Part shown: positions 520 to 35,563 of the stretch, one piece after another
How positions within the stretch are numbered: position 1 is the stretch's first letter
How the letters are laid out: the number at the start of each line of letters is the position of its first letter
Source of the DNA: Bugula neritina
Lineage: Eukaryota; Animalia; Bryozoa
Length of the DNA stretch: 64,000 nt
Direction: 5' to 3'
NCBI GenBank assembly: GCA_964035545.1
Contig: OZ037767.1
Coordinates: 15,442,998 to 15,506,997, forward strand
Notes under the pieces: model-generated
The model's input: only the letters and a program-made list of their open reading frames with translations
What the model was told of the DNA's origin: nothing
The model's database searches: none
Program-made: the position numbers and the translations under genes

Positions 520-721
520 TTTGCGGTGGCTTATAATATGTTAGCTTCATTCAAAATATCTGGCAAAAAGTTTATCATGAGCTAAATGATATGATCTCTA
601 ATGATCATCATAATTTTAACTCAATATATATTTATAAAATAATTGCTTCCAATAAAAAATGAAAACTTCCATATGCATAAAACACTTGCATGACATAAAA
701 GATGAAATGAAATACCCGGCT

Positions 722-3041
722 AAGCTAAGCACAGACACCACGATATTTGTGGGAGCTCTGCATGGTATATGCTGAACCCGGAAGGCTTAGCCTGTGTTAT
801 GGAAGAACTGTTTGGCCCAGTCATCTATGCCAGCATTGACACTGACAAACACAAATACCCAATTGGTAGGAGCTTAGTCTATGTTCTGACACAGCTATGC
901 AACTTCCTGAAACAGTTTGTGCTAATAATATATATAACGGAAAAAAGTATTTCTGTGAACTCATTTACAATTCCTCTATTTTATTATTATCACCTTTACA
1001 TAACTCTACTATAATAACACACAATTGTGTACTATATATACAATTTCGTTGTTTTTCTATAACTACATTGATATATATGCTATCTCTACTATCTATATAC
1101 TGCAGTCAACACTCTAAGGTTACATTGATATATTACATAGTGTAAATAATTTAGTAGCAGAACATGGTTGTATCTGTTGTAGGTTCTGACCGTGTGACTT
1201 TCAGCTGCCATGACAGCTACAGGAATGCACTTGACACTGCTTTTGTGGAAATAGAAATTCCAAAATTTACTAAGAATTAAAGTATTTGTGCTCTGCAACT
1301 ATTATAGTTTTTAAAATCATGTTTTTATATAAATTGACATAATATTTTTCATTACCTTTTTTGGTTTAAATTACTATATTATATTTGAATTTTTGCAAAC
1401 TTGTAGTGAAATTATGGAGCTAAACTGTGTATTTTACTTAAATAATTTGCAAGTACAACTAGACCCTTACTTGGAGGAATCTATCTGTTACGTGTGCAGG
1501 ATCAGTTTAGGGCCATAATTTTGCAGACATCCAATGTGCTCCAAGGTAACACAATTCCTTGATTATCTTGAGGAAAATTAGCTTTGCTTCTAAACCAAGA
1601 GAAAATATATTTGACAAGTATAAGTATTTAATTATTTAATTTAGGTTTTCATCTAATTTAATTATTTATTGCTATAAATTTTTATAAGACTTTTAGCAGC
1701 TCAAGATTTGCACATACAATTAATTTGATAATCTTGAAAGTGTAACTGCTACAATTGTTACCATAATTTATGTAATTATGATACATTATCTGTTGGTAAG
1801 AATAGACTTTTTCATTAAGAACACACAGGATAGTTAAGGGCAACCTTTTAGCTGCAACTGCCTTGCTGAGGTTTGCATTGTAATCATATAAGAATTCAGT
1901 ACCAGTGAAATAAAATCTCACCTAATTGTGCTAGAGTCAAAATTTAAAAACTATGTTGTAGATCTTTTTTTTCTCCAGTGTAAGTTTTTTGGAAATTTCA
2001 ATTTTCATTTTTTTTGCGAAGTTATAGACAAAAAACTGCCGAATTTTGGCCAGTTTTGCCTGAAAAGCTGACTTTTCAGTACCAGTAAAATATCTCAGCA
2101 GCAAAGCATGATATCTGAATAAAAATTGCAGTGCTGGAATCCTGAGATATTTCTCCAGTGTAAGTTTTTTTCTTTTTTCAATAACTCTGCTAGATTTCTC
2201 ATAAATTGGTGATTTATACACTGAAAATGCCATATTTTCTCATAAGAAACTAGCAGCGCGCAGCACTTCACGCTTCACTGAGCACGTAGGGGTGAGAAGA
2301 TATTGGCGCGTACATACTAATTACAGGCTAGCTAGCTGGCAGGCTATAATGAATAGCTCGCTTTGTACTTTGTTTATGTAGCACCCATAATGGAATGTTG
2401 ATAGATAACGCAGCCCTAACGAAGGTTGCTGCTTATTGGTTGTAGTTTAATCTTAGGCTAAACAATTACAAGTAGGCAACACGCATGCCACCCGCAGAGC
2501 AATATTATTCAAGAACCTGAACTACATTTTGAGAGAAATTTATGATATTCTTAGTGAGGATGCCCTTAACTATCCTGTGCATCTTTTGGCATGTCACTTT
2601 TCCAAGTTTACTGCAAACATGTCATGAAAAACGTTGCTGCATGAGAGCTATTAGAATCTCACTTAGTTTAAGTTGTTGAATATTTTAAAGAATAGTTTTT
2701 AATATACTGTAAAAACATTAGTATAAGGTACAAGATTATTAATAGTAAATTAACATATAGATGCATTATCATTATTAAAAAATCTTCAACATATCAGACT
2801 TTGAAAAAACACTACACTGCATGGCAATTATTTATTTGTCTGACTCCGCTAACTTTGCAATTCAATTTTTAATAAAATTGTTCTGGTTTTATTCTCCCAG
2901 TACTTCTGTGAACTCTGTTGGCGCTGGCAGCACGCTGACTTGGGGGAAGGAGCCCAGGCCCATCATCCTCTTACCAGAAACTCTAAAAAGTGTCGTGGTT
3001 TCTCAGAAGGAGGCTCTAGACACGCTAGAAATGGCATTTAA
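722..3041 (+). pseudogene. CPEB1: CPEB1-like 3' fragment (RRM2 + ZZ zinc finger), disabled copy; exons ~722-865, 1183-~1276, ~1453-1545, 2901-3041
   Basis: Translates to [42 protein letters not shown]|SDRVTF..AFVEIEIPKFTK|[25 protein letters not shown]|[20 protein letters not shown], matching the CPEB1/Orb RRM2-ZZ sequence. Versus copy 2 it has a +2 insertion (ggtATatg ~767), a lost exon-2 donor, an AG>AA exon-3 acceptor and an in-frame TAA. Confidence 0.9.
1824..2579. mobile_element. Non-autonomous CMC/EnSpm (CACTA-type) DNA transposon, 756 bp
   Basis: 19-bp TIRs CACAGGATAGTTAAGGGCA / TGCCCTTAACTATCCTGTG, 2-bp TSD (CA), internal direct repeats (ttctccagtgtaagtttttt x2, tcagtaccagt x2). Absent from the paralogous site in unit 2 (~25972). 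Confidence 0.85.
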
Positions 3042-3881
3042 ATACGAAACTGTTGCATATATCTTATATGGAAGTTATGTTTAGTGTCTCATTGTTGTTT
3101 ACTCTTGTTCTGTTTATTTTGCTATTTTGTTTGCTGCTATATTTTTCCAAGCTTTATTTTTTTAAGCCAGTGGTTTTAAGTAAAACTTTCTTTATTTCCT
3201 GTTTTAAATCCTTGCTTAGTAAACATCAAAAACAAACAAAAAATGATAAAAGGCTCCCTATAGTAAAGTGTGTAGATTTTAATAATTTAGTGAAGGATGT
3301 TTGAAGGTATTAGAGCTGTTTATTTGCTAGTCTTAGGGGTGTAGTTTTGTATTTTGTAGAATAATATTAGCTGTTATATTATATTAAACATAAATAAAAA
3401 ATCTCTCACATGAGTTATTGCCAGCAATTAAATTTGCACCCAATACTTGAATAAGATTATAAGGAACTATATATAGTATGATATATAGGTGCACTGTTAA
3501 ACCAAAGGTGCTTCATTGTTACTCAAACAAATTTATTTCTGTTTTTTTAAGGAAAATGATCAGTAGAAAAATTTAGATAGTTTACAAAAAGCAGCAAAGC
3601 TCAGAATTCAGAATAATATTTATATTCCATGCAAGATGCATTACATAATACTGTTTATTGAAAATGCATGTTGTATGTCGAGTGTTGATTACCAATATAA
3701 CTGAAATACAAAATCAGATTTATATATATCATATAGCTAAATATTTAGAGTTATACACAGTTAACTCAAATGTATATAAAGAGATATTACAGAAGAATAA
3801 AATGAAACTTTTGTTTAAAGAAATTAAAAAGAACATTTCAATATATTACTGTAAAAATTAGGTTAAAATCTTAGATAAATT

Positions 3882-6800
3882 CTAAACGAGCACATAGCAA
3901 GTAGAACTTGAAGAATTTTCAAACACAACTGAAACCTCATTATGAATATAACATTTAGCTGTAGAGGTTATTGAAAATGCTGCACAATTTTGATATTGCA
4001 CACTGCAAGCGTAGGCACATGATTCTATTGAGAGCTGTTTGAAAACCCCAACAGATTTACTGCTACACATGCGATCAGATAACGCTGAGAATCTTTTATG
4101 CTTTGGATGACTCAAGTAGTAAAAAGTTTGAGAAGTTTTGCTGTAGACAATGAAATTATTCTCAGTTGATGTGGCGGATATGAGGTCAAGGTCAGTGTTC
4201 AGACCAGTCACCACAACATCTACTAATCCAACATGGCCGCTACTCACTTTGAATCTCTTCAGTTTTCCTTTGTTTACAAACAGCTGCTGCCCATCCACAA
4301 CAATAGGTATGCAATTGTTGCTGCACTCAAAGCTGACAGTGTTGGTGTTTTTGTGAACAAGAGATTTAGCTTTGCAGGTTTTAATATCACTTGTAAGTGA
4401 AACAACTCCAAATGATTGAACTGTTGGATAATAAAAGTTGCTGGCAAAGCCAGTTACAAAACCAAACTGAAGACTGTAGTAGCCATGTATAATGATAAAA
4501 TATGAGGGATAGATGTTTAAAATTACAGAGTAGACATTATTGTTTTTCACACAATTTATGATTAGTCGTGTAACGTCTGCAAAGTATAAAATTGCCAGGT
4601 GAGTTGGTGAATCAAGTCTAATATCAGAGATTCGAGAGTATGTTTGATATGCAATGAGGGTACCTGCTTCACCGCAGTGACCAATCATAGCATAGTTTAC
4701 ATTTAGTAGGTCAGCAAGATTTACTGCTTTTATACAGTGCTCTGATTGGTCCGCTACAAAAATAGACTGGTTCTTGTAAGATTCTAAAAGGCTGAGTTTA
4801 GACAGGTTTGCAAAAATAATATGACTAATTGAGGTAAATGTGTAGGAATTTTGCATATATAGGCACAACCTTGTAGCTGCACACCAGCTACTACTGTACA
4901 GTCTCCATGGTGATTGATCTCTACAAGTTGTTTTGATGTAGCTGTTATTATTTTAGTAGAATCAGTTGGATGTTCAATAAAGGATATGATGTCATCAGTC
5001 ATTTTCTTGACCCCAATGTGACTAGTGGCCTGGTAAGGAGTGCTGGTTGGACCATCTGCCGAATCAGTTATTAACCTTTGACCTACAAACAGGTACACAT
5101 TGTTTAAAACTCAGGTGGGTTTTATATATCTGAAAAAACTACTGATGGAAAGGCTTTTTAAACGGACTAAAGATTTGCTTTTTATTAGGGCACAAGGGCA
5201 ATTATGACTAACATTACCAATACAGCATTTATATAACAGAAAATTGCTGTTTAACCCATATATATATAATAAAATATTCAACAATTTTAGCAATTTATGA
5301 AACTGTTCATGTAAAAACCAAATTTAAGAATCTTATCAAGTATTGCTGTAATTCTCCGCAAGTTGTGTTAGTTTGCTGAAACTTCATCTTTTCATATACC
5401 TATATAATACTTTAAACGGACATTGCATATGACTTGAATATTGATTAGCGCTACATGAATTAGCTTAGGGCTTGTTTGACAAAGATCAAAATTAATATTT
5501 AAATTATAATTATGTATTAAATATTGGACTATGGTATGTTCAAATTTGTTTTATTATTCTAAAACTTGTTTGATTTTATGCAAGTCCAACATTCTGGTCT
5601 CTAATGTAAACGAACAATTTTTATCATATCAACAAAGTGCTTAATGCAATAATTTCATTCTTAGCCAAATGGCAACTTTCTAACATGAGAACATGTGTTT
5701 ATTTAATTTTTAAAAACCATAACAATAAACATCTTTTGATAGCACTTTTGCAATATAGAATATTTAATTTAAATTGCGTTACTTTATATGGACTGCGGTA
5801 GGCATTATATGAATTAAGTTTTGTTTATATACCTTAACGATTTATAGTCAGAAATTCAATTTGGCAGAGTTGAAATTTTTCCAAGTTGCATTGCATTATG
5901 AAAGTCACTCGTAAAATTTTTTGTGCTGTGATAACTAAATCGGCCGAGTTTAAAATAACAATCAAAAGGAGTAATAACTCTTTGTAAACATCATTATTTA
6001 GTTATGACTTGAGCGACTATAAATGACAATTCAATATGTTTATAATTATATTGTCAACGCTTTCCCAATTATCGCTTTTATGCTGTCAATTTTATTAATT
6101 CAGGAAGTTTTCAAAAGTAGTCAAATAGCAACTTTCTTTCATAATATTATAGTACCATACTCTGATTACAAGTCTATGATCTAAACTGCGAAATGTTATG
6201 GTTACATAGATTGTGAATTTAAGTTGCATGGCAGAAACAAATATATTATAACTGCTTTTAGAATACATTATATATGCTTGTCCATTGATACTGGTTTTAT
6301 ATAACACCAGTCTTATATTACTGGCTTTATATAACAGCCGTCCTATATTACTGTTCTTATAAAGCCGGTCCTATTAAACCCCTCCTTTATTTCTATAGTC
6401 CTATATAATACCGGTCTTCTTAAAATAAGCTGGTCCCATAATATTGATCCTATAATATACTGATCCTATATTACCTACAATAGGCCTATAGTAAGCTGGT
6501 CCTATATAATATTACTTATAGTCCTACATTACTGGTCCTATACAATAATATAATAAGCTGGTCCTATATAATATAATAAACTGGTACTATATATAATATA
6601 ATAAACTTGGCCTATATAATATTAGTCCTGTAGTGCATGTTGGTGCTACAATACTGGTCTTATAATAAGCTGGTCCTATAGTACTGGTTCTATAATTAAA
6701 CTGGCTTCCTAACATTGTTCCTATCACTCACAATATATCTATAAAAATAATTGATTTATATATTATATATAGCTGAATAATCAGTATATCATAGTTTATT

Positions 6801-7753
6801 ATACATAGAAACAATAACAATTAATTTGAAGGACAGCTGTTTATAAACCAATCACATTACCTGGGAAAGTCTTGTAGATACTGTTTCTCCATGTTCCACC
6901 ACACATTTGACTACTGTTCCCTCTGCATGCTCTACGACACTCAGTTTCCCCTGCTTTACCATATTTGTTGTATTCAACACCACAATAACACTGGTCAGTA
7001 GATTGTACTCCTGCATATGGCTGTCCTGAAATTAGTAAATTACTAATCGATCTTTATAAATATAACAACACGATAAATCACAAAACACAATTTTTTTATA
7101 GTTCAGCTACAATTGGCAGATTCAAACTTATATATGCCTTTAAAATGGAAAAATACTGAAATCAATGAAAATTAAAAATAAACGTTTTCAAAGAATCAAA
7201 TAATTATCAGGTATAGTAGGTTCTTACAAAATATTTTTGGTATACTGCAGTTATTTTTGGAAACATTTATAAAAATATTTACCTTGTATAGTGCAGTAGC
7301 CAATACAAAGCTCCACGGTCATCAAACGAGTTGAAAATGCTATGGGTAACGCTCTGCTACTAGAGTCCTTGTAACAACCAATCAGCTGGTTGAGAGTGTT
7401 CACCAGATGCAAACACAGCCAGAGTTGCAGAAGCACTTAAATTATACAACTAAATTAGTCAATGTTTTGTAAAAAAAAGTTTGAACTAACAGACTCAAGT
7501 ATTTAAAAAAAATAAAATTTAGAATAAAAAGTTTTGAATAGATAAAATTGAAGCAAAATATAAAAGTATAAAAAATTTACATAGTAAGTTAAAACACATT
7601 TTTTTGTTTAGATATAAAAAACGGATATAATAATCTACATTGAAATTAACATTTCGAAATTTTTTAAGTTGATAAACATGTTTTTCATATTTTAGATCTT
7701 ACGAAGCTAACTGAAGCAAAGCATATCTTACCAAGCCTTAGCTGCAGCAACAT
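3882..7753 (-). pseudogene. Gene A1: secreted WSC / NHL-like / PAN-Apple protein, frameshifted; exons 7753-7732, 7435-7283, 7025-6861, 5082-3882
   Basis: GT-AG phase-1 introns join a signal-like peptide (MLLQLRLVLLQLWLCLHL), WSC (IGCYKD..RALP..MTVELCIGYC..G.PYAGVQ..QCYCG..C..C.GN..MCGG.WRNSIY) and the large last exon. A +2 TA insertion at ~4856-4861 splits that exon into ORFs 4784-5098 and 3882-4868; the A2 copy is unbroken. Confidence 0.85.
6290..6725. repeat. Degenerate ~16-20 bp tandem repeat (ctggtcctatataata-like) in intron 3 of gene A1
   Basis: More than 15 recurrences of ctggtcctata variants; a shorter version sits at ~29238-29457 in unit 2. Confidence 0.75.
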
Positions 7754-9317
7754 TTCATTATTACTATGTCTAGCCAATTCAACCTTTAATCATGCAGTAA
7801 ATTGGCTTTGAGTTTGTAATAACTTTTATTTCTAGATTAGAGATTTATTTTGGAATGCAAAATACATTAATTAGTTTGCACATATGTAAGATACACAACT
7901 TGGTTTGCCTGTGCAATTGTAACACTACTCCAACCTTATCCTAAAAGGCCTAGACTATATATTTATTTTATGAATTTATTTTCAAATATAAGGATACAAC
8001 TTGTTTGGAAAAATAGATCATGTTGTTAATGAATCGCAAAGTAAATGGGGAAATCTAATTGATTACAAATCGCAAACATCCCACATCCTATATATATACT
8101 GCACACTTTAAGCCGCACAATTATAAATTGTATAATTAGTTTTAATTTTACTTTAGGTAATATTTTAAACAATTTTTTGTAGCAAAATAATTTCTCATAG
8201 ACATTTTCTTGAATTAATTTTCGTTGACATGTGTTATAATGAATGATATATTTTGATGTTTACTTTATGTAACATTTTAACAACTCATATACTAGTATTT
8301 GTTTATTATAGATATGTCTATAATTTAGAATGAAATGAGATAAATTGTGCTACATTGTATGGGTATGCTGCTTTAAGATGGCAATTTTATATTTTTGCTA
8401 TAGGTGGTGCTTATAAGCAAAACATATTATTATGATTATCAATATAATTATTATTATAATGGTGTTATAACATTGACATATGTAAAATAATATAAATATT
8501 GATTTTTACATTATTTTAGGTTAATGTTGAAACAAAGATTACGTAGAGATATTACTTTTATAGTTGTTTTTCATTACTTGGTGTATCTATTATGACAACA
8601 TGCATTGAAATTATTCGCCCACTCTCAGTTACACAACAACTTTATTATAACATCAGGAGAATCACAATGAAACATGATACCAACATTCTATCTTCCATTA
8701 GCATGAAATATTTGACAAAGTTAAACATTATCAGACATTCAAATGTTTACTGTCACTATTAGCATGAATATAGATTTTTCATACTTTTTATGACACTAAT
8801 AGCATGAATTATCTTTGTATTCTGTTTATTTATTATAAATAATACATATACTTTACCAGTTTTCTATATCCGACGATCTTGCTGCTATAACACACTTTAC
8901 GTTACTTAATAATTGCAAAGTAAATATCATAAGTACATCTCTGAAGTTGCAGACACTTTGAACTGTAAGAACAAAGTTTTTAACAAGGGAATAATAAGGA
9001 AAAATCTATAAATGAAAGTTTTTGTTGTATGTGGGCATTGTTATAGGCTCTTTCAATAAGTTCACTTCGTAGATGCTACAACAGTAAGTTACTAACAAAC
9101 TTTATTAATTTTATAGTGAAATATCATTTTCTTAAATTACATAATTCAGCAGTTTTACTTTTTATGTGGTATATAGCTGATTAAAGCACTATATAGAGCT
9201 GAGAAGCTCTGAACTTTAGTGAAATTTCTATTTCATTATCAGAAGTGGTTGGTGCGTGTATATTAGTAAATGACTGTACTGTATTCTATGTGTGCATATA
9301 ACTCTTGAAAAGACTCT

Positions 9318-9376
<59 letters not shown>

Positions 9377-9380
<4 letters not shown>

Positions 9381-9625
9381 GTACTGATACAATTTTGGAT
9401 ATAAAAATAAACTTGGATCTTCATTTTAGCGACTACAATATTGTTTCACGCAGTGCAAGCTACGATCATCAGGTCGTTGTGTGTACGGTTGAGTGCTTTT
9501 GTTTTGAAATTACTCAAGCGTACACACAACGACCTGATGATCGTAGCTCGCACTACGTGAAACAATATTGTAGTCAATAGAATGAAGATCTAAGTTTATT
9601 TTTATATCCGAAATTGTATTAGTAC

Positions 9626-9629
<4 letters not shown>
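9377..9629. mobile_element. Palindromic (foldback) MITE embedded in a (TA)n microsatellite
   Basis: tttggtactgatacaattttggatataaaaataaac... mirrors ...gtttatttttatatccgaaattgtattagtaccaaa over ~118-bp arms. (TA)n tracts flank both sides (9324-9377, 9629-9676). Confidence 0.85.
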
Positions 9630-9688
<59 letters not shown>

Positions 9689-9833
9689 ATATATATAGAT
9701 ATATAGATATATAGATATATATGATAAAGTAAAATATGCCATCACACCACTTTCTCTAAATAGATATCAAATATATAACACTATATACAGTCACATGTTA
9801 AGTAAACAAAGAATGTGTTATATCAGAGTAGAG

Positions 9834-12410
9834 ATGAAGAATATTCTAGAAGTATACGCTCTGATTCTCCTTATACATGTGACTACTTCAGAATACATGG
9901 GGTGTTATAAAGATGAAATAGAGAGAGCAAATTGCCTTTAGTCGGGGAAATTACTAACATGGCAATATACTTTTGTATAGGCTACTGCATCTATAGAGGT
10001 AAAGATAATACGACGTAAATCTGTTTTTCTATTTAATATATTATGCCATAATTATATAAACTTTATTAGATATGTGATGTATTGAAATTGTGATTCTTTT
10101 ACATCAATTATATGACTATTATTATCTTTTTCTCAAACATAATATAAGCATATTATAATAATATTATATTATATTCTTATACAGCAATTATATTTTTATT
10201 ATGTTGTTCTCATCCAGTTATATAATACTTATGGCATCTTGATATTTAATTATTCTTGTACAGCAACTATATAAACATTATATAATTCTTGTATAGTAAT
10301 TATAAAAATGTTTCATTATTATTGTATATTAGATATATAAACATTATATCATTATTCTATTGTAATTATATAAATGTTATCTGTATATTTTAGGCCAGAT
10401 GTATGCTGGTTTGCAGGATGGCAGACAATGATTCTGTGGTACAACCTTTGACCTCTATGGAGCTCTAGACAAATCAAGTTGTAGCAGTAGATGCACGGGA
10501 AATGCGAGTCAGATATGTGGGGGAAGCTGGGCAAACAGTGTATACAGAGCACTGTCAGGTAAGATGAGACATTTTTAGATAAAATGAGAAAAGTCCTTTA
10601 GGTAATACATGAAATTGGAGTTTTTTAATCTTCACAATACTTATCAAATTTTATTTAACCAAATATTTACTTTTACAGACGATTGTTATTCTAAAAAATT
10701 GGCTGATAGCGAAATAGTTTTTAAAGGAATATTAAAATAATTAAACTCAATTAAGAAAGTTTGAATGATTTGACCTTAATACTTCTGACAAAAAGTATTA
10801 TTACCATGAATTTTTAATTATTAACAACTAATAATTTGTTTAATCTATAGCTACATTGTTTAGTTTATTTCCACACTCTTGTAAGTAACAGTATATGGTA
10901 TAGAACAGTATATAACATGTTTTTTGTTGACTCGGGTAAAATTTTTGTAACTTTATGATAAACTATAATAACTTAGCTCTTTTTGATATGCTAAATAAAT
11001 GTACATATCTTTATTATGTTAAAGCTTGCTAACCTAAATAATTATGTATATTTTAAGATATATGTAATACATATTTATTTATTTAGTAATATTTACTTCT
11101 GTGTTTTTATGAGTTTCTAGAATCATAGTTTTATTGTTACATTATTTATTATTATACCATTTTTAGAAAATGTCAAAACACGAAAAAACAAACCCGCAAA
11201 CTTAGTCCACATCAGAAATATTGAAGTTAGAGAAATAAGTGAGGAAATCATATCCTTTATCGAACATCCGGCTGATTCTACTAAAATAATAGCAGCTACA
11301 TCAAAACAACTTGTAGAGATCAATCATCATGGAGAGTGTATAGCAGTAGCGGGTGTGCAGCTACAAAGTTGTGCCTATCGATCAAATGAATTTTCTTTTT
11401 CCTCAATCGATCATTTCATTTATGCCCAGTTCACCAAACTGCAAGTATCTCACAGTCTTTTCAACAAATCAGCCATTTTGGTTGCTGATGCAGGTAATCA
11501 CTGCGTAAAGTTTCTCATTCTAAAAAATTTATCATCTTTTGAGTTTGACAATTCAATAAATGACTACCATGTTGGTAAGTGTGGATCTTTTAAAAAAGAA
11601 CTTTTGACTGAAAATATTCAAAATTTAATTGATCCTAAAGAAATGGAGCTAAATAGCCCAAAACATCTTTCTCTGTACCATGACTCTGAGACTATCAGAC
11701 TGGTTGTTAACTGTGTACTAACAGAAGTATACTCTGTTATTGTTAGTATCTATCCAACTCACACTGTGGCATATGAGTACAGTGGACACCCTGGGTATGT
11801 TACTGATGTTTCTGAAAATCTCTATTGGCCATTATTTCGATCAAAAGGATTGAAAAGTCTTTCAACTGATAACAGCACATTAATAAACCAAATCCTTGTC
11901 ATTAATGGGAGTTACTCAACTACTGCAAATTATTATTGCGATTCCAGGAACAGTTCTGCTATTCCCAGACTGTTTCAAAGTTGGCCTCTAATAATTGCAA
12001 ATGGTGAATTGAAATCCCTGGTTTATAATTTGACAAGCAGTGAAATCAAACTAACTAACATAAATATTGCTAATCTTTCTACAAAAACACCCCCTGAGTT
12101 TAACCTGTTCACTACAACAAAGGAATCCGATCACATTATTCTCTACAGTCAAAGCCTAAAGAAATTTTATTATGCAAAGGCATTTTCTCGCTATCAGAAA
12201 ATTCTGGAAAGGTTCTGTAGTAAATATGTTATAGAAAAAGCAATTGTGGGTGGACCTGAAAGTTGTGCTTACATCTGTAGTAAATATGGTAGTCAGTGTG
12301 TTGCTTTTTCTGTTAATGATTATGATAATTCTTGCTACATTCATGACCACTTTGACTTGGCCGAGGCCTACATATCTAATGACTCAGCTTGTTATTTATC
12401 TATATCATAA
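9834..12410 (+). pseudogene. Gene B1: WSC / NHL-like / PAN-Apple protein, disabled in the WSC exons; exons 9834-9998, 10394-10558, 11167-12410
   Basis: MKNILEVYALILLIHVTTSEYMGCYKDEIERA is followed by a +2 shift (gcaAAttg) giving TAG at 9939-9941. Exon 2 has TGA at a conserved WSC Cys (Q*FCG, 10429-10431). The last exon is fully open, with an ILVADAGNHCV motif and the PAN Cys pattern. Confidence 0.85.
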
Positions 12411-12571
12411 TTATAACATATAATTGCATAGTTGAACACCACTTTCTGATGACAACATTAATGATGCTTTACTCTAACTTATGTTAATTTTTAATAATCA
12501 TAATTATATTATTTTCATTCACTTAAATATTTTATGGAAATGATACACAGTGGTTTTTAAAAATTATATGT

Positions 12572-12681
<110 letters not shown>

Positions 12682-13099
12682 TACTATATATACAGAGTCT
12701 GTACTATATATTACAGACGGTAGATTGCTATATTATATTTGTGTATCAACAAATCAATAAAATAAAAATCGAAGATATTGTTTATTTGAAGCTTTTTTGG
12801 AAATTTATTATAAATATTTGTAGGTTGTGTAATTACTGATTAATAAATAATATTTATAACAGATGGTTTCATTATAATTTTTAGATGACATTGTTTTAAA
12901 GAACATAATATGTATTAATTCAATCAAATTTATTTGACCCACAAGAAAATGCAGCACAATTATTTGTGAATTAAAAACTTCTTATTAAATAAAGATTGAG
13001 TAATAACCAATTCAGTATATTTTAACTATTGATATACTTATATAAGAGAGTAAGTTAAACAGAAATGTTCATCTTTGCACAGATACTTGCAAGAATATC

Positions 13100-13478
13100 T
13101 ATAGTGTATATAGAACTTTATAGATATAGAAAAGTTATAGATATAGAATAGTTATAAGTATAGAATAGTTATAGATATAGAATAGTTATAATTATAGAAT
13201 AGTTATAGATATAGAATAAGTATAAATATTAAATAGTTATAAATATAGAATAGTTATACATTAGATATAAAATAGTTATAGATATAAAATAGTTATAGAT
13301 ATAGAATAAGTATAAATATTAAATAGTTATAAATATAGAATAGTTATAGATATAAAATAGTTATAGATATAGAATAGTTATAAATATATAGAATAGTTAT
13401 AAATATAGAATAGTTATAGATATAGAATAGTTATAATTATAGAATAGTTATAGATATAGAACAGTTATAAATATAGAA
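13100..13478. repeat. 16-bp minisatellite (tatagaatagttatag/a)
   Basis: About 20 or more tandem units; essentially identical copy at ~35985-36360. Confidence 0.9.
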
Positions 13479-15769
13479 GTGCTGCAGTCAATAATTTAAG
13501 CAACTTTACAAACACATTATTATATATATACATAAACATTCACCAGATATATTTAATAATTTATGATGCACATGGTCAAACATGCAATTAATATTACTAA
13601 TATTTGCTTATAAATACAGTCATACTAATATTGTTTACATGACTGCATTTGTTGAAAAGAATGGTAATAACAGTTTTAAAAGACAATTAAAATTTTTTAC
13701 TGGGTTATGTAATATAATTTGTTTAACTGTTTCTTTTAATTACCAAATATCTAAAATAATATTTTAATGAACACAAAGTTATTCACTGTTTTTCCACTCT
13801 TTTTAAATCTGTAAAACAAAAATTTTTAGATTTAATAACTAAATAATAAACAGTGTCTGTTTATTTTTTTAAAAATAGACAGTGTTTATTTTAATCCTTC
13901 TTAAGAAACTTAATTAGGTAAAAAGTAAATTATTAAAAATTGAAAAATAATTGCCAAATCCAAGATACATCAATTCAATATTACATTTAAATTTATAAGA
14001 CAAATGACTTTTTGTTTTTGATAATAGATTTTTGTGTTTCATTATACAAGCTCTTTTGTAAAAAATGTTCTTATAATTATTAATATATTTTAAGAAATGA
14101 TTACAGTTTCAAAAGTGGTCAAATTACTGCAGCTGTTTGGCTTCAGTGAAACGACTCTTGTTGCTTAAAGCTAATGGGCTTTGAAATTATGTTTGTTATA
14201 GAAGGATTATTAATGTAAATATCTAAAGAAGCTTATAGACTAAGACTTAGTGCCTTGTAATTAAATATTATTTTACAGATATCCTATAAACACTGACATA
14301 TAACTCACAACAAAAAAGGTATTCTTTCATGTTTGAATATTGGAACTCAAAATTATTGATTAATTTTTAATTTTTAATATATAAACAAAACATGGAAGTT
14401 TACTATATACATTTAAAAACTTTAAGCTACGAAGCAACACTAAGTACAACAATTTCAGACCAGCTATAGAGATCAAATCTTGAAGAATAAAATCCAATCT
14501 TGTCAAGATACTGAAATCAGGTATTATGAGAATTAAATATATATACCTACATTTAACTTTCTATGTTTCACCTTTTACATGCAGTTTATGCTTTATGATT
14601 TATAAATTTTACACTCTATCCTTTATATTCTGTTTTCATATTGCATATTTAATATTTTATGCTCTAAGTTTCACCTTCCAGGTGTGACATTCTACATTTT
14701 AAGTTCTACATTTTGTATTCTAAATACCGTATCATATTAGAGGTAATGTCTTATACATTTTAGTAAAATGATCATAATATCACAGCCTTGCACTTGAAGT
14801 ATAAATTTTATAAGAATATAAGATGTTATAAAATTAGTTGGTGATAAAGTTTGAAAATGCACAATAGCATGAAGTTATTAATTATTCTAGTATTGATGAG
14901 CCATGAGTTTATTTTACAAGTTGTTTTTATTATGAGCTGATACATTTTCTATAAGCTGTAAAAGTGTTAGGATTGTTAGAATAACAAAAAAATAGTTTTT
15001 TCCTCTAAATGTTAAAACGAGACCTTGAAATTATTAATTTAAAGTGTTTTAGGAGTTTATTTAAACTTAATATATAGTTTTATAAAATAGGTTTAATAGT
15101 TATTATGTTTAACTTGAAAAACAAAAAAACTCTTATTTAATAATAAATTTCAAAATGTTGAGATATTATTCTTTACTAAAATGCCTATATTGTATAAGGT
15201 AATAACATTTTGCAAATTGTTATTAGCAGATGACAAATGAAATACCAATACGTTCTTATTCACAGTATAATGGTTCCATCCCAGCTAGATAGACACTACT
15301 TTTTATTTTGGTACCATATAATTATATAGTAATATATACCTATATATATATAGCGATATAACTGTTTCATTGATTGCTAAATAGCTAAAATGCTAATAAC
15401 TTTATTAGCTAACATGAATTATTTGGAATATTATTCTAATTTTCACAAATTTGTGAGAGACAAAAGACAGTGTAATACAATAACAATAGACATTACATTT
15501 AATTATTGACTACCCATTCACAAAATATCTGTTCAAACAAGAAGCAAAATATATTCAAAATTAATGTTTATGCAAATCAAAGAAATTGTTAATGTGCTAA
15601 ATATGTGCTTTATTTAAGTATATATATATTTTTTAATAATATTAAAATAAATTGCACATAAAATATATATTGTACCAAAATAAATTAGTAGCGTCTAACT
15701 GAGAGTTGCTATATATATCTAGGATAACACCCGAACAAACTGTTTTTATTAACAGCAGCTGTCTAGAAG

Positions 15770-18746
15770 ATGCATCAATATCTGATGTGTATAGCACTGG
15801 TTCCTATAGTTTATGGTTCAGTGTACATGGGTTGTTACAAGGACACCTCAACTAGAGCTCTACCATTGAGGTATGATTCCAATGACATGACAGTCGACCT
15901 TTGTATTGGCTACTGCATTTACAGAGGTAAGTATTCCATTCACTTACTTAGTTGATTTTTTACAATACAGTGAAATTGCAACCTATAAAGCAGGGCTGAT
16001 AAATTAGCCATCATTTTAGGAGTACGTCACAATGTCATGAAACTTCAAAGGAACTGCAATTATCCTGGAATAAGATTGCTACATACTTATACTTAAAATA
16101 ATTGTGCTTGCTTTAAAGTTTAGACATTTTATCTGTGAGCTACATGCAGTTGGTATCTAGCATAGTGACCCGCAGTGGTATAGGGGTCAGAGCGTTTGCC
16201 TACAAGTAAGCACAAGGTAATGAGTTTGAGCCCCATTATAAGCCAGTAGTGATGTTAGGAAGAGCATCCAGTCATAATTGCTCCTGTGCCTCATATGAAT
16301 AAGTCTTAAGCCAGCTTTAACAAAAACCCCTTCTATCAGAGATCTTCTCATAGGTATGGTGACTATAAACTTGTGTGAGTTGGTATATATTAGCATGTGT
16401 GCACATAATAATATATCCAAAAAAACTTGCATGTCGCAATATATATTGAATATCTATATAACTTTGAAATCTATAGCTAACTAGTTGTTTGATTGGCTAT
16501 AAATATCATATTACAGTAAATTATTTAAAGTGAATTGATTATATCAAATTAATATGTTAGCAAGCATAAAGTCAACTAATATTAATAATCGCCTTAGTTG
16601 TAAACTGATTCAACAAATGTAAATAAATCAATAGAGAAAGTTTATGCATACAAGCAATTAGCTGCTTGTTATATTTGTTCAGTAAGTGTAAATATTATAC
16701 ATGTTCAGAAACTGCTTGCTTAAATTTAGCTAATTAATAGCAAGTATAAACATTTTGTTATTTATATAAATGCTATGATATTAAGTTTGTCAGAGGAAAA
16801 TTCAATTATACAATTATTATTTGACTAGTCCTAGAAAAGTTTATGAATATTAAGATTATTTGAAGGATACTCAAATGATAGTTTATTAATCAAAGTTTTA
16901 TTCACATTAACTAGAAAGCCCAGCTCTCTATCACTATATAGCCATGATATATTTGCTAAAATCTTGGGAAAAAGTAACTATGTTATAATGGCAAAATTGC
17001 TACTTATATATTTTCTAGTACATATATATGCTCATTGAACCATAATTTTTAATCAAATAAAATGTTGAAATGAATATTATTCAACCCTGCTGGTATTTCA
17101 AGGTCACCCCTACGCTGGTTTGCAGACGGATGACACTTGTTTCTGTGGAAGTGAGTACGACAAGTATGGAATCGGGGAAGAAACGAGCTGCAGAGACCCT
17201 TGTAAAGGAAATACTAGTCAGATATGTGGTGGAGGCTGGAGAAACAGTGTCTATAAAATAACTGGAAAAGGTGCGTAAAAAATGAACTCAAAATTAAAAT
17301 TGAACAATTAAATTTCAATGCAAATAAGGAAAATAAAAATATTTTTGATGCTTATTTACTATTATTTTAAAGCCTAAAAATTTGTATATTTGCACCTAAA
17401 TTTTAATAAGATTTTAATCGTAAAATATGCTTAGATTTAAAGTCACTTCAACAATGTATCAAACAGCTAAATTTTGTTCAAATTATATATACTGTATAGA
17501 AAAGAATGAATCTAGCCAAAGTGTACCAAGACCCATTCGCTATGTCGGCAAAATTGAAGTTGGAGAACTAACTGATGACATCATATCCTTTATTGAACAT
17601 CCAACTGATTCTACTAAAATAATGGCAGCTACATCAAAACAACTTGTAGAGATCAATCATCATGGAGACTGTACAGTAGTAGCTGGTGTGCAGCTGCAAG
17701 GTTGTTTGCATACGCAAAACTCACTTTCATTTGCTTCCATCAGCCATATTGTTTATGCTCACTTCACTGATCTGAATATACATCACTTCCTGTTTAACAA
17801 GTCTGTCATCTTGGTAGCTGATGAAGGTGACCATTGCATTAAATTCTTTGAATTTCAACAGAAACCTTTGTTCTCTAATTTTCAAACCTACAAAATTGGC
17901 AATTGTGGACTTCCACAAGTATCCCCTTTGTTAGCTGATAAAGTTCGACACTTTAGTGAACCTCAGGCAATCATGCTGAACACCCCAAAACATCTTTCTC
18001 TGTACCATGACTCTGAGACTATTAGACTGGTTGTTAACTGTGTACTGACTGAAGTATACTCTGTTATTGTTAGTATCTATCCAACTCACACTGTAGCATA
18101 TGAGTACAGTGGACACCCAGGGTATGTAACTGATATGTTGAATTATTTTGATTTTCCAATGATGAAATCACAAGGATTTAGCAGTGTGGAGGGCAAAAGT
18201 GATTTAGCAAAAGTAGAATTGCATATTGAGGTGAACTTTGGCACATCAATTGAGGTTTATAGTTATACTTGCGAGTCAAATATCAGTTCAGAAGTTCCCA
18301 GAGTGTTAAATGATTTACCAACAATATTAATCAATGGTAAAGTTCGGTATTTAATTTACAATCAGACTAGTCAGGAGCTGTTCATACGGAATTTACAAGT
18401 TTTAAATCTTCCCCTGGAAGCAGAGTTTAAACTGAGTCAGTATACTGTAGTACGTGATTCTCTCATACTCTACAGTCAAAGCCTGAAAACATTTTATTTC
18501 ACAAAGAAATATTCTCAATATCAGAGAGTTAGTGAGAGTCAGTGTAGTCAGTCTATTATACAAAAGTTACAGGTGAATGGAGCTGAATCTTGTGCTTATG
18601 TCTGCTTTAAATATGGCGACCTTTGTGTTTACTTTTCATTTAATAGTGTAGACAACTTCTGTTATATTCATAATGAGGTCAGCAATACTAGTATCATTAC
18701 TACTCCAGGTTTCTACTGTTACACATCTTTAAATTATATATTTTAA
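15770..18746 (+). CDS. Gene C1: secreted WSC / NHL-like / PAN-Apple protein, ~523 aa, intact; exons 15770-15926, 17103-17270, 17500-18746
   Basis: Signal-like MHQYLMCIALVPIVYG, WSC split over two exons (YMGCYKD..CIGYC|G.PYAGLQ..CFCG..C..C.GN..CGG.WRNSVY), ILVADEGDHCIKFF NHL-like motif and C-terminal C..ESCAYVC..C..FSF..C.IH..CY PAN pattern. Spliced length 1572 nt with no internal stop and no TM segment. Confidence 0.88.
16167..16370 (+). mobile_element. Putative degraded tRNA-derived SINE in intron 1 of gene C1
   Basis: A-box-like tggtatagggg (16176) and B-box-like gagtttgagccc (16222) at tRNA spacing, followed by an aggaagagcatcc core. GC-richer than the flanks. The 3' end is uncertain. Confidence 0.4.
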
Positions 18747-21700
18747 ATGTTTAAACAACTTGTTGGTTCTTTTAACATCAATATTATATCCCAATTTTAA
18801 TTTAGTAAGTTATCACACAAATAATAACTTATTGAATGAGTTTTCTGACAAAGAACGTAATTTCTTTCTGATGCTGGTAACAATTACAATTATATTTATA
18901 TGTTTACAGTCTAATATCTATGTTTCGTCCAATATTTTAGTTATGTTGACATTTATGCTTTAGCTGTTGTGAATTTCATAAACACTAATATCGATTCTAA
19001 AATGTATTTTATCTCAATATATAAGTGGATATACCATTTTAATCAAAAAGGAGAACAATAATCAATTAAGGTAATTGAAAGGGCACAACAGAAACCTATA
19101 TTATATGAAATGGTCAGAAGAGGACAACTCTAGATAATCATAATATCCCAGTGATAATTTCACTTATTGACTGCAAATGCATATTATTTGTCTGATCAAA
19201 CAATAAAAAGTCAATGACTATACGTTTTTAATATAAACAACAGCCATGTCTGTGTTTTACTAAATCAGCCAATCAAATATTTGCTAAAGTAGCATTCAAT
19301 TCTCTTAACTAACTTATTATATTATTTCATCAGTTTCAAACTCTAAAGAAGCATCCAATATTTTGAAATACTAGATAATGAGTGTTTCTAGTAACATGTG
19401 ACAGCATAAACTCTCATTGGTATCGCTGACTGTATTATTATACGGAGTGAAAAACATTGAGGCACCAAAATAGTGAATTTTTTTACACTCAACTTTATTT
19501 GATATCTGCACAGAGAGAAATATTAGTGCAGTGCTTGCACTAAAATTGTTCAAAGAGCCTTTTATTGCCAGTATAGCCTGCACCAGACCTCTAATATTTG
19601 TTAGACCTGCACTTATTTTGATGAAATTGAAAATTAATCCGATTAGTGTAAGCTGAAAAACATTTTGTAGTAGCTCTGAAACCACTTAGTTACTTTTCAC
19701 AAGTATTACGTAATTATCATCCCTAGGTTCTAATGAAGCTAAACAGTAATTGATAGGAGCAGAAAATGAGATCAATGCTACAACTACATAATGTTCAACT
19801 ACATTATGTTCAAGCAAAATTTTATTTACATAAGAATTATGGAACAATCAGCAGTTGTTCACCTAACAACATTATTTGTTCACATTTACACTGATGATGA
19901 TCACAAACCTTTATAGGAAGCTAGGATAGAGTTGAACCCTACATTTGGGTCATTTCGATTGGTGCTTCCCAGTTAGATGCTATTTATACATTTTACGTGC
20001 AGTTTATTTGAATACTATTGAAATATATGTGCATTTAAATAAATTTGAGTCAATTGCTTTTTGTAATTGGCACACAAATAAATTTCTTTGCTCTGCATAA
20101 ACCTATTAATTTTGCATTTTCTATATTTTTTGTTTTTTGAAAAAATGTTATTATTAATGCATTTAATGCTTTTTTTCAACACAAATTTGGAAAAATTTAA
20201 ATATTATTGCAAATATATCATATTAATGGTTATTTTATGTTTAGCAATGATATGAAAGTTATATAAGGGTATATAGGTATATAATACTTAGCACCAAAAC
20301 AAAAAATACAACTTAACTGGGGAGCATATAAGTGGAATGCAACTCCATCAACCTACTGTTCATGATTTTGAAATTTCTATGAACCTAAGATATTTTCAAA
20401 TAGCTTGTTACCAGACTACTATTAAACATTGCCCCATTCCGTTTATCAAAGACTAAGGCTGAAGTTGAATTTATTAACAAAAAATTTCATCTGCACATAT
20501 TATCTCTTGCATGGGTAGTTTAGGCTTCACTAGTCAATTTCATTCATGGAAAGGAAAGCCAACTAATTTAAAATGTGTGTAAAAGAGAGATCGGGGAGAT
20601 GCACCATTAAACTCCAATGTACTCAGTTATTAGCAAATGTGTTTCAAACAAGAAGCTTAAAATTAATAACAAAACAAGCTACTGAATAGTCAAGTGTAGA
20701 TCAGGTGAACCACTTCAAAAGCCTAAGTAACTTGAGTAAATTACCTGGTGAAACAAAAGAAAACGTTGCATAACAAAGCTATAGTAAGGAAATATTTAAA
20801 ATGTAATTTAAAGGCTAGAAACTGGCTTACCAAGCAGTAACAAAGCAAAGCAAAGGTTATTACATAACAGCACATAGTTTTCATTAACGGCTATTGACAG
20901 AAGAAACATTCTGCAGGCATAGTGAACACCAGAAGCTCAGACTAAGAGGTTGTGCTTTGAGATTCAGTAACTTTGTGCTTCCAAACAACCTCACAACATG
21001 GAAGACATTGAATCAGTTAATCACCAGGGTAAAGATTGCAGCTACTTCTCAGAGATAGAAGATGATCACTTTCTTTCAGAGTTAGAAACTAAAGTTGTTA
21101 TTGCAATTTGCAGCAAAGGGTAAGCTCAATCATTTGCTTAACATTGTCGTTTGCTATCACAATGACAGTATGCTTGAGTATGACTATTGCTATAGACAGA
21201 TAATTGAATTTGTGCAACTATAAATTTCCAGAGATCACATTGACTGATATTTCTCAAACTATTCTAATCCTATATCAATTTGATACGCCTGTTCCTGTAA
21301 TCATTTATTTCTAAAAAGTTTAGTGTTTTATTTCAACGTCATCTAGCAATTTGTGCCAAATAATGCAGTTTAGAAGCCTACAACAGCTGCCAAGCTAATT
21401 TCTTGTTTTATACTTTATAGCTGAGTACCAAACTGAAAATGCCAAATTTAGTGGTGAGTTGGCAAAGTTCATAAATACAAGAACATTTTATTAACTTCCG
21501 TACCACCAGTTTATATTCTTATTTATTTTTGCACAGCACAATTAAATGCTGAAATAGAAAAAAGATGTTTAAATAGCAATATTTTTCTTGGTAGTACTGT
21601 ATTTGTTTTTCAATTTATAGACATACTGAAACTTATTTCGATATAAGAGGCCCATATAAAATAATAAATAATCATCTTGAGTTTTATACGGGAACACATT

Positions 21701-23509: not shown

Positions 23510-23555
<46 letters not shown>

Positions 23556-23603
23556 GCTGTCTCTTGAACTGTTTGTAAAATACATTTTCATGGGCTGTTT
23601 TAG

Positions 23604-24770: not shown

Positions 24771-24815
24771 ATATCTCAGGGGTATAAATAGAAGAGAGAA
24801 CATCTTTTATATAAG

Positions 24816-26435: not shown

Positions 26436-27283
26436 ATACGAAACTGTTGCATATATCTTATATGGAAGTTATGTTCAGTGTCTCATTGTTGTTTACTCTC
26501 GTTCTGTTTGTTTTGCTGTTTTGTTTGCTGCTATATTTTTCCAAGCTTTATTTTTTTAAGCCAGTGGTTTTAAGTGAAACTTCCTTTATTTCCTGTTTTA
26601 AGTCCTTGCTTAGTAAACATCAAAAACAAACAAAAAATGATTAAAGGCTCCCTATAGTAAAGTGTGTAGATTTTAATAATTTAGTGAAGGATGTTTGAAG
26701 GTATTAGAGCTGTTTATTTGCCAGTCTTAGGGGTGCATTTTTGTATTTTGTAGAATAATATTAACTGTTATATTATATTAAACATAAATAAAAAAATCTC
26801 CCACATGAGTTATTCGCCAACAATTAAATCTGCACCCAATACTTGAATAAGACCATAAGGAACTATATATTATAGTGTGATATATATATAGGTACACTGT
26901 TAAACCAAAGGTGCTTCATTGTTACTCAAACAAATTTATTTATGGTTTTTTAATGAAAATGATCAGTAGAAAATATTCAGATAGTTTACAAAAAGCAGCA
27001 AAGCTCAGAATTCAGAATAATATTTATATTCCATGCCAGATGCATTACATAATACTGTTTATTGAAAATGCATGTTGTATGTCAAGTGTTGATTACCAAA
27101 ATAAATGGAATACAAAATCAGATTTATATATCATATAGCTAAATATTTAGAGTTATACACAGTTAGCTCAAATGATTATAAAGAGATATTACAAAAGAAA
27201 AAGGTGATACTCTTGTTTAAAGAAATTAAAGAGAATATTTCAATATATTGCTGTAAAAATTAGTTTCAAATTTTAGATAAGTT

Positions 27284-32054: not shown

Positions 32055-32138
<84 letters not shown>

Positions 32139-32142
<4 letters not shown>

Positions 32143-32387: not shown

Positions 32388-32391
<4 letters not shown>
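32139..32391. mobile_element. Palindromic MITE in (TA)n, duplicate of 9377-9629
   Basis: Same sequence; only the flanking TA tract lengths differ. Confidence 0.85.

Positions 32392-32442
<51 letters not shown>

Positions 32443-35445: not shown

Positions 35446-35563
<118 letters not shown>

Follow-up and report, generated by a model that had tools for sequence, protein, structure and literature searches.

We analysed a window of 64,000 nucleotides from the genome of the bryozoan Bugula neritina. The window contains genes of three related types, A, B and C, and each of them carries a segment of 135 nt that we call block 1. A ~23-kb unit of three genes, with A on the minus strand and B and C on the plus strand, is tandemly duplicated, so that the window has six copies of block 1 (Table 1). 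The block is thus common to genes on opposite strands. The genome holds 30 copies, ten for each type. All of them lie in one array of ~730 kb on the chromosome-scale contig C3 (15.149-15.878 Mb, assembly tzBugNeri2.1), in which the three types are interleaved.

The block was first noticed in an inspection of the window (below, the original prediction). This gave the correct coordinates for the A and C blocks, but placed the B block at 11247-11378, a few bases off its position in register with the other two. It overlooked the second set of three copies in the window, and the 30 genomic copies.

Table 1. Genes, exons and constant blocks in the window. Positions are counted from the first nucleotide of the window.
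Feature	Position	Strand	Remarks
Two tandem copies of the ~23-kb A(-) B(+) C(+) unit	721-19500 and 24854-42374 (span 721..42374)		mutual identity 89-98%
A1 exon 3	3882..5082	-	frameshifted
A1 WSC exons	~6858-7025 and ~7290-7385	-	
B1 upstream exons	~9834-9998; ~10394-10558		first frameshifted; second with TGA at 10429-10431 replacing a conserved Cys
B1 exon 3	11167..12410	+	
C1 exon 1	15770..15926	+	ATG, hydrophobic leader, N-terminal half of WSC domain; GTAAGT donor, phase 1
C1 exon 2	17103..17270	+	C-terminal half of WSC domain
C1 exon 3	17500..18746	+	predicted six-bladed NHL-like beta-propeller, then PAN/apple domain
Block 1, copy A1 (type A)	4865..4999	-	2-bp TA insertion immediately 3' at ~4855-4861
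Block 1, copy B1 (type B)	11238..11372	+	in register with A1 and C1 blocks
Block 1, copy C1 (type C)	17571..17705	+	gene intact
Block 1, copy A2 (tandem unit 2)	28262..28396	-	exon 3 open
Block 1, copy B2 (tandem unit 2)	33992..34126	+	coordinates good to ~1 base
Block 1, copy C2 (tandem unit 2)	40453..40587	+	
Constant block 2 in C1	18021..18170 (approximate)	+	types B and C only, 0.92-0.99 identity

Gene structure and predicted proteins

We located the upstream exons by their conservation between the B. neritina genome and the orthologous contig from JGI metagenomes. In a tblastx comparison of upstream sequence among A, B and C, low-complexity matches swamped the output and no exons were picked out. 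Exons 1 and 2 were searched singly and exon 3 was folded alone. Exon 2 of C1 matches the WSC domain (Pfam PF01822) with 38.8 bits (cut-off 27.8) at profile positions 40-82 of 82, and exon 1 matches it with 23.2 bits at positions 1-35 of 82. The C-terminal 101 residues of the exon-3 product match the PAN/apple domain (Pfam PF00024) with 23.4 bits (cut-off 21.4); the score using the whole exon-3 product is 20.5 bits, slightly under this cut-off. The signal peptide was judged by eye from the hydrophobic leader.

The AF2 model of exon 3 (pLDDT 72, pTM 0.70) has ~24 strands. Its top Foldseek match is the NHL domain of Brat (E = 2e-6; TM 0.38 by query, 0.52 by target), with WD40 and other propellers scoring nearly equally. 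The family combines WSC and PAN/apple modules, both of the carbohydrate-binding kind and recognized by Pfam, with a predicted fold whose best structural match is an NHL-repeat propeller of the Brat/TRIM-NHL kind. Unlike those propellers, the exon-3 product has no Pfam match to the NHL family profile at E <= 0.1. The three-exon gene probably encodes a secreted protein, in which a signal peptide and a WSC domain are combined with a six-bladed NHL-like propeller and a PAN/apple domain. Block 1 occupies codons 25-69 of C1 exon 3, which correspond to predicted blade 1, and in the model it appears to encode exactly one of the six blades. Constant block 2 spans four predicted strands, or about one blade. 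No other protein segment of the family is as well conserved as blade 1. Amino-acid identity between types is 36-51%.

To our knowledge, no WSC-propeller-PAN architecture has been described, and the only sequence relatives that we found are in Bugula. This family of ~30 genes in 730 kb is apparently Bugula-specific and undescribed.

Some of the genes are damaged. A1 is probably a pseudogene, because of the 2-bp insertion just 3' of block 1. B1 is probably also a pseudogene, because it has a frameshifted exon and a stop codon in place of a conserved Cys, and both of these lesions are present in B2 too. The putative pseudogenes A1, B1 and B2 retain block 1.

We rejected an “RNA” run (X1) as evidence of expression. 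It covers exon 3 and repeats only, and its contigs are ~93% identical to the window, as is the sister lineage described below. DNA of a sister lineage, mapping only at conserved coding sequence, explains this pattern.

A near-identical block in divergent genes

In the window, block 1 is 90-97% identical between types. The original prediction put the difference between A1 and C1 at about four positions, and we count exactly 4 in 135 nt (97.0% identity). B1 is 90% identical to A1 over 150 nt, and only 78% identical to C1 over a 600-nt match containing block 1. Identity to the C1 block is 87-100% over all 30 genomic copies, and at least 91% in 29 of them. Outside the block, nucleotide identity between types in exon 3 is 25-78% and synonymous sites are saturated; for A and C, it is 0.22-0.72 in windows of 8 codons. 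In a fine profile, identity climbs and drops within ~6 codons at either edge of the block. Even assuming that the flanks differ at only 30% of sites, a stretch of 135 nt with at most four differences has a probability of 6e-16.

The similarity extends to synonymous sites. By Nei-Gojobori counts, pS between types is 0.08-0.13 in block 1 versus 0.39-0.96 in the flanks. Within types, pS in the block is 0.01-0.07, a similar scale to that between types. The claim that the segment is nearly identical in otherwise very divergent paralogues is therefore correct, and the sliding comparison of synonymous divergence, with its low values in the block and sharp edges, supports gene conversion.

Selection on the protein does not suffice to explain this identity, as the original prediction had argued. 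Synonymous sites in the block do change: paralogues that are unlinked to the array keep the peptide, yet their pS in the block is 0.53-0.82. Among these, the E-type paralogues on contig C1 have a pS of 0.53-0.60, although their amino-acid identity in the block is 62-70%.

Conflicting genealogies

The tree of the flanks has one clade for each of the three types (SH-aLRT 99-100), and these lie 0.27-1.04 substitutions per site apart. By contrast, the 22 sequences in the block 1 tree form a star with a depth of at most 0.04, and none of 200 bootstrap trees has a monophyletic type. The AU test in the block rejects a clade of A (p = 0.024), but leaves B (p = 0.31) and C (p = 0.25) as possible clades. 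The genealogy of block 1 differs from that of its flanks.

We also applied a runs test of the Sawyer/GENECONV type, using the E-type paralogues as outgroups. Outgroups are needed here, as a site at which A, B and C agree would otherwise not count as polymorphic. For A-C (17 sites) and for A-B (22 sites), the longest concordant run is inside block 1, and none of 10,000 permutations attained it. Trees of the separate blocks and a test of this type had been suggested as checks on gene conversion, and both bear it out.

Block 1 is not invariant. In this genome, 49 of its 138 alignment columns are variable, with many of these at third codon positions, and all four gametes occur in 37 of 276 pairs of informative sites. 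A CAT/CAC polymorphism in a His codon segregates in all three types, and in copy A_L023 three linked sites form a B-type patch. A Leu codon near the 3' edge is CTA, CTG or CTT, and one fixed difference near this edge (CTA/CTG) sets C apart from A+B in this genome. The synonymous sites of the block are clearly not frozen and seem nearly free to vary, and variants are exchanged between types.

The between-type distances in the block do not depend on proximity, with 7.2 differences for neighbours and 7.1 for distant copies (permutation p = 0.58). Therefore, recent local exchange is not visible. The copies could have been homogenised in large part at about the time when the two lineages that are compared below separated. 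There is no signature of GC-biased conversion, in that GC3 is 0.18-0.23 in block 1 versus 0.29-0.33 in the flanks.

Comparison with a sister lineage

Independently assembled JGI metagenome contigs (L051-L054) represent a sister lineage, with one sequence per type only. Its A, B and C orthologues carry block 1 with identical edges. Between orthologues of the two lineages, pS is 0.12-0.14 in block 1 and 0.19-0.24 in the flanks. In pooled counts, synonymous differences amount to 11/89 in the block versus 140/652 in the flanks, i.e., they are ~2-fold fewer in the block (Fisher p = 0.049). A two-fold slowdown of block 1, through slightly stronger constraint or less frequent mutation, is possible.

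Block 1 has no site at which the types differ consistently in both lineages (0/126). Such type-diagnostic sites number 61/288 between blocks 1 and 2 (B versus C) and 329/1068 downstream of block 1 (A versus C). In block 1, the A and B sequences of the sister lineage have two changes in common that are absent in every A and B copy here. Similarly, in block 2, its B and C sequences have three common changes that are absent in every B and C copy here. A pattern scan of the metagenome contigs, from which records close to this genome may be missing, found no further copies from the sister lineage.

Probable interlocus gene conversion and its alternatives

Block 1 is very probably an island of concerted evolution, made by ectopic (interlocus) gene conversion among the old types A, B and C. 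The sliding comparison of synonymous divergence, the runs test, the conflict between block and flank trees and the comparison with the sister lineage all back conversion between paralogues, as the original prediction had proposed. We infer this from sequence comparison. The claim that conversion is recurrent has moderate support. It takes several separate exchanges to account for the data, but there is no sign of very recent ones between neighbours.

Conversion would have repeatedly copied the 135 bases of blade 1 from copy to copy, across types and strands. The block would thereby have acquired one shared recent history, while the flanks retained their old, type-specific histories. As the slowest-evolving segment of the family, blade 1 may have remained similar enough in its DNA to serve as a repair template. 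After homogenisation, the ~135-nt stretch of identity would be the sole usable homology. Heteroduplex would be stopped by flanks of ~50% identity, and selection on the type-specific blades may remove longer tracts. The same process could explain block 2, another predicted blade that is constant in B and C only.

A single old conversion or chimeric replacement might instead have put blade 1 into all types shortly before the lineages split, with slow evolution and no exchange since. The star-shaped tree and the missing proximity effect are compatible with such an event, as are the non-rejected monophyly of B and C and a between-type pS in the block (0.08-0.13) that is about that of orthologues (0.12-0.14). 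We nonetheless consider it unlikely. No type-diagnostic site in the block persists in both lineages, and the A clade is rejected. Variants such as CAT/CAC in all types, the three-site patch in A_L023 and the 37 four-gamete pairs speak against it. So do the changes that are common to different types of the sister lineage and found in no corresponding copy here, namely the two in block 1 (A and B) and the three in block 2 (B and C). Purifying selection on a function of the DNA or RNA, such as a structured RNA, a shared small-RNA target or an exonic regulatory element, is very unlikely. This idea, which the original prediction had offered beside conversion, draws on the identical block edges in both lineages, on the lowish pS within types and on the halved orthologue divergence at synonymous sites. 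However, the two-fold drop in rate is too small for the eight- to ten-fold deficit between paralogues. More than a third of the columns vary, often at third codon positions, and so does the Leu codon near the 3' edge. The unlinked paralogues hold the peptide and lose the synonymous sites. In addition, the RNA of the block is not predicted to fold more stably than shuffled sequences (MFE -26.2 kcal/mol; mean of the shuffles -28.6, with z = +0.60).

The original prediction also mentioned a recombination anchor. Under this explanation, the constant blades provide homology at which crossovers or programmed recombination shuffle variable blades between genes, giving receptor diversity. Variable segments are indeed framed by constant blocks 1 and 2, and the array is large and codes for putative recognition proteins. 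Nevertheless, shuffling is extremely unlikely, since the type is concordant on both sides of block 1 in 29 of 30 copies in the germline assembly, the exception being a 5'-truncated fragment, and the 288 nt between the blocks hold 61 sites that are diagnostic of type in both lineages. Therefore, this segment was not swapped between B and C. That an assembly or polishing artefact homogenised a short repeat is effectively refuted, and we found no evidence supporting it. The assembly was made by hifiasm from 132x HiFi reads and has a QV of 53.7, and the word “polish” is absent from the text of the assembly paper. Moreover, the 30 copies carry many distinct variants of the block. For each of the three types, Illumina-based JGI contigs from other samples span the block together with the flanks on either side, and a contig from another public run (X2) spans the 3' edge at 17705.

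Relation to known systems

Diversity-generating systems include pseudogene conversion in chicken immunoglobulins, the assembly of lamprey VLRs, and var and VSG antigenic variation. Like these, the Bugula array has related cassettes in which conserved stretches stand beside variable ones, and it encodes putative recognition proteins. However, those systems copy variable parts by means of constant homology, whereas in Bugula exchange is confined to the constant part, with variable parts that stay specific to their type. The WSC-propeller-PAN proteins could act in recognition or adhesion, in an animal that is colonial and bears symbionts. It is very improbable that the constant blades, i.e., that of block 1 in every type and that of block 2 in B and C, serve as anchors for somatic or germline exchange that recombines variable blades of this putative secreted family, i.e., as an invertebrate diversity-generating system for, e.g., allorecognition or symbiont recognition. 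The germline assembly contains no chimeric copies of the kind that anchor-mediated exchange would give.

The process in block 1 is a known one, textbook gene conversion, and the block is a clean example of it rather than a new mechanism. Concerted evolution of part of a gene occurs in tandem families such as human RHD/RHCE, the gamma-globins, the red/green opsins and MHC genes. As in these cases, a short tract is far less diverged than its flanks, synonymous sites included, and the genealogies of tract and flanks disagree, with variants common to paralogues within a lineage. The tract is also the most constrained part of the protein. Unlike in these cases, the block lacks a GC-biased signature. 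The Bugula partners are also very old, with saturated dS in the flanks and the low amino-acid identity given above, and the island of only ~135 nt is shared three ways, between opposite strands included, among ~30 copies. These genes are a very clean natural case in which conversion keeps a single propeller blade identical among otherwise saturated paralogues, and the control outside the lineage distinguishes conversion from constraint on the nucleotides.

Block 1 in an array of three paralogue types

Block 1 is a 135-nt segment of exon 3 that is nearly identical in genes of three old paralogue types, A, B and C. The window holds two trios of these genes (A1, B1, C1 and A2, B2, C2). The original prediction placed the block correctly in A and C, and was off by a few bases in B. 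Its count of about four differences between A1 and C also stands (97.0% identity over the block). B1 matches A1 at 90% over 150 nt, and matches C1 at 78% over 600 nt enclosing block 1. The second trio of blocks is present because a unit of about 23 kb, with A on the minus strand and B and C on the plus strand, is tandemly duplicated (721-19500 vs 24854-42374, 89-98% identical).

We found 30 copies of block 1 genome-wide, 10 per type, all inside C3:15.149-15.878 Mb, where roughly ten A-B-C units, not all alike, are spread over 730 kb. Identity to the C1 block is 87-100% across these copies, and at least 91% in 29 of them. One unit is inverted: its C gene (C3:15726631) is on the minus strand and its A gene (C3:15735594) on the plus strand. 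One C-type copy, L018 (G000:C3:15399050-15402172), is cut off at about position 12 of block 1. The 1.5 kb upstream of it has no similarity to the window, which indicates a rearrangement breakpoint at the 5′ edge of the block.

Positions of the C1 exons and of the homogenised blocks. Positions are those of the window, except for L033, which lies on contig C1 (another chromosome, not gene copy C1) of assembly tzBugNeri2.1 (G000).
Feature	Position	Strand	Remark
C1 exon 1	15770-15926	+	ATG and hydrophobic leader
C1 exon 2	17103-17270	+	conserved with JGI orthologue
C1 exon 3	17500-18746	+	predicted propeller and PAN
Block 1, A1	4865-4999	-	sequence match
Block 1, B1	11238-11372	+	sequence match
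Block 1, C1	17571-17705	+	sequence match
Block 1, A2	28262-28396	-	second trio
Block 1, B2	about 33992-34126	+	second trio
Block 1, C2	40453-40587	+	second trio
Block 2	about 18021-18170 (C1); about 11690-11840 (B1)		B and C island, predicted to span about one propeller blade
E-type pair L033	G000:C1:3832838-3840107		head-to-head

Divergence along exon 3

In a codon alignment of the 19 copies with an open exon 3, synonymous differences between types (pS) amount to 0.08 (A-C), 0.13 (B-C) and 0.10 (A-B) in block 1, against 0.39-0.96 in the remaining segments of the exon. Synonymous divergence in the block and in its flanks is therefore not alike, as the original prediction had anticipated. Nucleotide identity between types is 0.92-0.96 in block 1 and 0.32-0.66 elsewhere, except for an island shared by B and C (0.94). 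In 8-codon windows, A-C identity rises from 0.25 to 1.00 on entering block 1 and falls from 0.98 to 0.47 on leaving it, each edge taking about 6 codons. Even at a true difference rate of only 30%, four or fewer differences in 135 nt have a probability of 6e-16. Since pS within types (0.05, 0.07 and 0.01) is on the same scale as pS between them, the three types act as one family in block 1. The second island, block 2, is common to B and C only, with identities of 0.92-0.99.

We found no footprint of GC-biased conversion in block 1: its GC3 (0.18-0.23 over all copies) is below that of the rest of exon 3 (0.29-0.33), the opposite of what such conversion would be expected to leave. In the D-type paralogues, which do not take part in conversion, the corresponding region has a much higher third-position GC of 0.58.

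The more distant paralogues, types D to G, retain the residues of this region and not its codons. Type D genes are located within the array or next to it, type E is the pair on contig C1, and further distant members occur on C2 and elsewhere on C3; the nucleotide block is absent from these distant members. Across types D to G, no other protein segment is conserved as well as the block region (amino acid identity 46-70% vs 23-40% downstream), where pS nevertheless amounts to 0.53-0.82. For the E pair, the region has 62-70% amino acid identity and a pS of 0.53-0.60. These alignments argue that strong protein constraint in the distant paralogues does not preserve codons, in line with the original argument that protein-level selection cannot hold synonymous sites. 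The E pair is nearest to type A outside the block, and for the pair itself pS is 0.07 in the block region vs 0.14 in the flanks.

Metagenome contigs from JGI (L051-L054, two samples) carry one A-type, one B-type and one C-type gene (JGI-A, JGI-B and JGI-C). Relative to tzBugNeri2.1, these orthologues have a flank pS of 0.19-0.24 and a non-coding identity of 70-82%, and they thus represent a distinct, sister lineage. They carry block 1 with identical edges, and pS between paralogues inside this lineage is 0.10-0.14 in the block vs 0.60-0.84 in the flanks. Between orthologues, block 1 has a pS of 0.12-0.14, and the pooled synonymous differences in the block (11/89) are about half those in the flanks (140/652; Fisher p = 0.049). 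A mild slowdown of block 1 is therefore possible, but by these counts it would be far too small for the eight- to ten-fold deficit between paralogues.

Genealogy of block 1

Trees were built separately for block and flanks; per-block trees had been suggested in the original prediction. In the flank tree, A, B and C form distinct groups (support 99-100) on branches of 0.27-1.04 substitutions per site, and every JGI orthologue groups with its own type. By contrast, the tree of block 1 is star-shaped and no deeper than 0.04 for all A, B, C and JGI sequences together, and the E outgroup lies at a distance of 0.64. Of 200 bootstrap trees of the block, not one recovers any single type as monophyletic; an AU test rejected an A clade (p = 0.024) and did not reject B (0.31) or C (0.25) clades. 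JGI-A and JGI-B pair in the block tree (support 82/88), and they have two changes in common that are absent from all A and B copies of tzBugNeri2.1. Similarly, three replacements in block 2 are common to JGI-B and JGI-C and occur in no B or C copy of tzBugNeri2.1.

None of 126 sites in block 1 splits any two types consistently in both lineages, compared to 61 of 288 between blocks 1 and 2 (B vs C) and 329 of 1068 downstream of block 1 (A vs C). Near the 3′ edge, one Leu codon differs consistently between C and both A and B in tzBugNeri2.1; the JGI lineage has other states there. Within tzBugNeri2.1, 49 of 138 block 1 columns are variable, and of 276 informative site pairs, 37 have all four gametes. 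At a His codon, every type is polymorphic, with CAT/CAC counts of 7/3 in A, 4/6 in B and 1/8 in C, and one A copy, A_L023, is alone among A copies in having three linked B-type states. In a Sawyer-type runs test with E outgroups, comparable to the GENECONV analysis originally proposed, the longest concordant runs of both A-C and A-B fell within block 1, and no permutation out of 10,000 equalled them. Genes of different types are no more alike in block 1 when they are neighbours. The sister lineage is represented by one sequence per type. These patterns need several exchange events, some after the lineage split, without pointing to frequent exchange at present.

Alternative explanations

The original prediction offered two options, of which conversion between paralogues is supported by the trees, the site patterns and the runs test. 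The other, a function of the DNA or RNA itself, is not supported. If RNA structure held the copies alike, it is not reflected in folding, as block 1 RNA folds no better than shuffles (z = +0.60). A role as an anchor for crossover or cassette exchange is at odds with the flanks, whose type is identical on both sides of block 1 in 29 of 30 copies. The sole exception is the fragment L018, which is truncated at its 5′ end and has no counterpart in the window for the DNA upstream of it. Moreover, the segment between blocks 1 and 2 is still type-specific in both lineages.

Nor is an assembly or polishing artefact supported. The assembly (216.00 Mb, 320 scaffolds, longest 35.64 Mb) was made with hifiasm from 132x PacBio HiFi reads at QV 53.7 (PMC11480708), and the word "polish" is absent from the text of that paper (PMC11480708). 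Block 1 exists in many distinct variants among the copies, independent Illumina (JGI) contigs span the block and its flanks, and a contig from a separate public run (X2) bridges its 3′ edge.

Predicted protein and possible mechanism

Upstream exons were located by conservation between C1 and the orthologous JGI contig. The resulting C1 model has three exons, phase 1 introns with GT-AG ends and a coding length of 1572 nt; types A and B have the same layout. Judged by eye, the leader in exon 1 is a putative signal peptide. In separate Pfam searches, the WSC profile (82 positions) is matched over positions 1-35 by exon 1 (23.2 bits) and over positions 40-82 by exon 2 (38.8 bits; cut-off 27.8), and the C-terminal 101 residues hit PAN_1 at 23.4 bits, above its cut-off of 21.4. 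Pfam found no NHL repeat in the exon-3 product. A fold computed from an alignment of 16 family sequences models this product as an all-beta propeller followed by a PAN module (pLDDT 72, pTM 0.70). Foldseek ranks the Brat NHL propeller first (E = 2e-6), with other propellers scoring close. Block 1 encodes residues 25-69, the best-modelled region (pLDDT 84-92). Its four consecutive DSSP strands (30-33, 41-44, 48-52, 58-63) suggest one blade, and those of block 2 (163-170, 175-182, 186-193, 198-204) suggest roughly another whole blade. A word search of 5.8 billion proteins recovered only three JGI proteins as relatives, all Bugula-like. An apparent RNA run was rejected as a sign of expression, because sister-lineage DNA explains it better.

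Some copies are probably pseudogenised and nevertheless retain block 1. A1 has a 2-bp TA insertion directly after the block (4855-4861, minus strand). In B1 and B2, exon 1 is frameshifted (B1: 9834-9998, plus strand) and exon 2 has a TGA (B1: 10429-10431, plus strand) in place of a conserved WSC cysteine. This TGA is limited to a B subclade (L027-L029), with Cys in the other B copies examined.

Block 1 has a separate, shared and recent genealogy, its synonymous sites evolve near-freely, and its variants have been exchanged among types on both strands. We infer that the slowest-evolving blade kept enough identity to template homologous repair. After homogenisation, the roughly 135 nt of identity would be the sole homology available, so that tracts would stop where the flanks fall to about 50% identity. 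Longer tracts would be removed by selection on type-specific blades, and pseudogenised copies with block 1 may act as donors. The finding is real and well characterised, and the process is of a known kind. Its interest is moderate and lies mainly in its being a clean, blade-sized example and in drawing attention to an apparently undescribed WSC-propeller-PAN family.

Other features in the window

A 424-aa ORF at the junction of the two units (23434-24708, plus strand) has a weak match to Plavaka transposases, below the cut-off (E = 0.0068, 16.1 bits), and may be what is left of a transposon at the boundary of the duplication. Intron 1 of C1 contains a very high-copy short repeat (16249-16445) with many loose ends and a summed contig depth of 3e5-5.6e5 in two runs, and this repeat resembles a SINE-type element. 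Another stretch, 15264-15854, is moderately repeated. Finally, an 869-aa ORF (58796-61405, plus strand) coincides with an A-skewed segment of high GC content (up to 0.44) at about 54-62 kb. Motifs resembling those of reverse transcriptases, recognised by eye, suggest that this ORF is probably a non-LTR retrotransposon.
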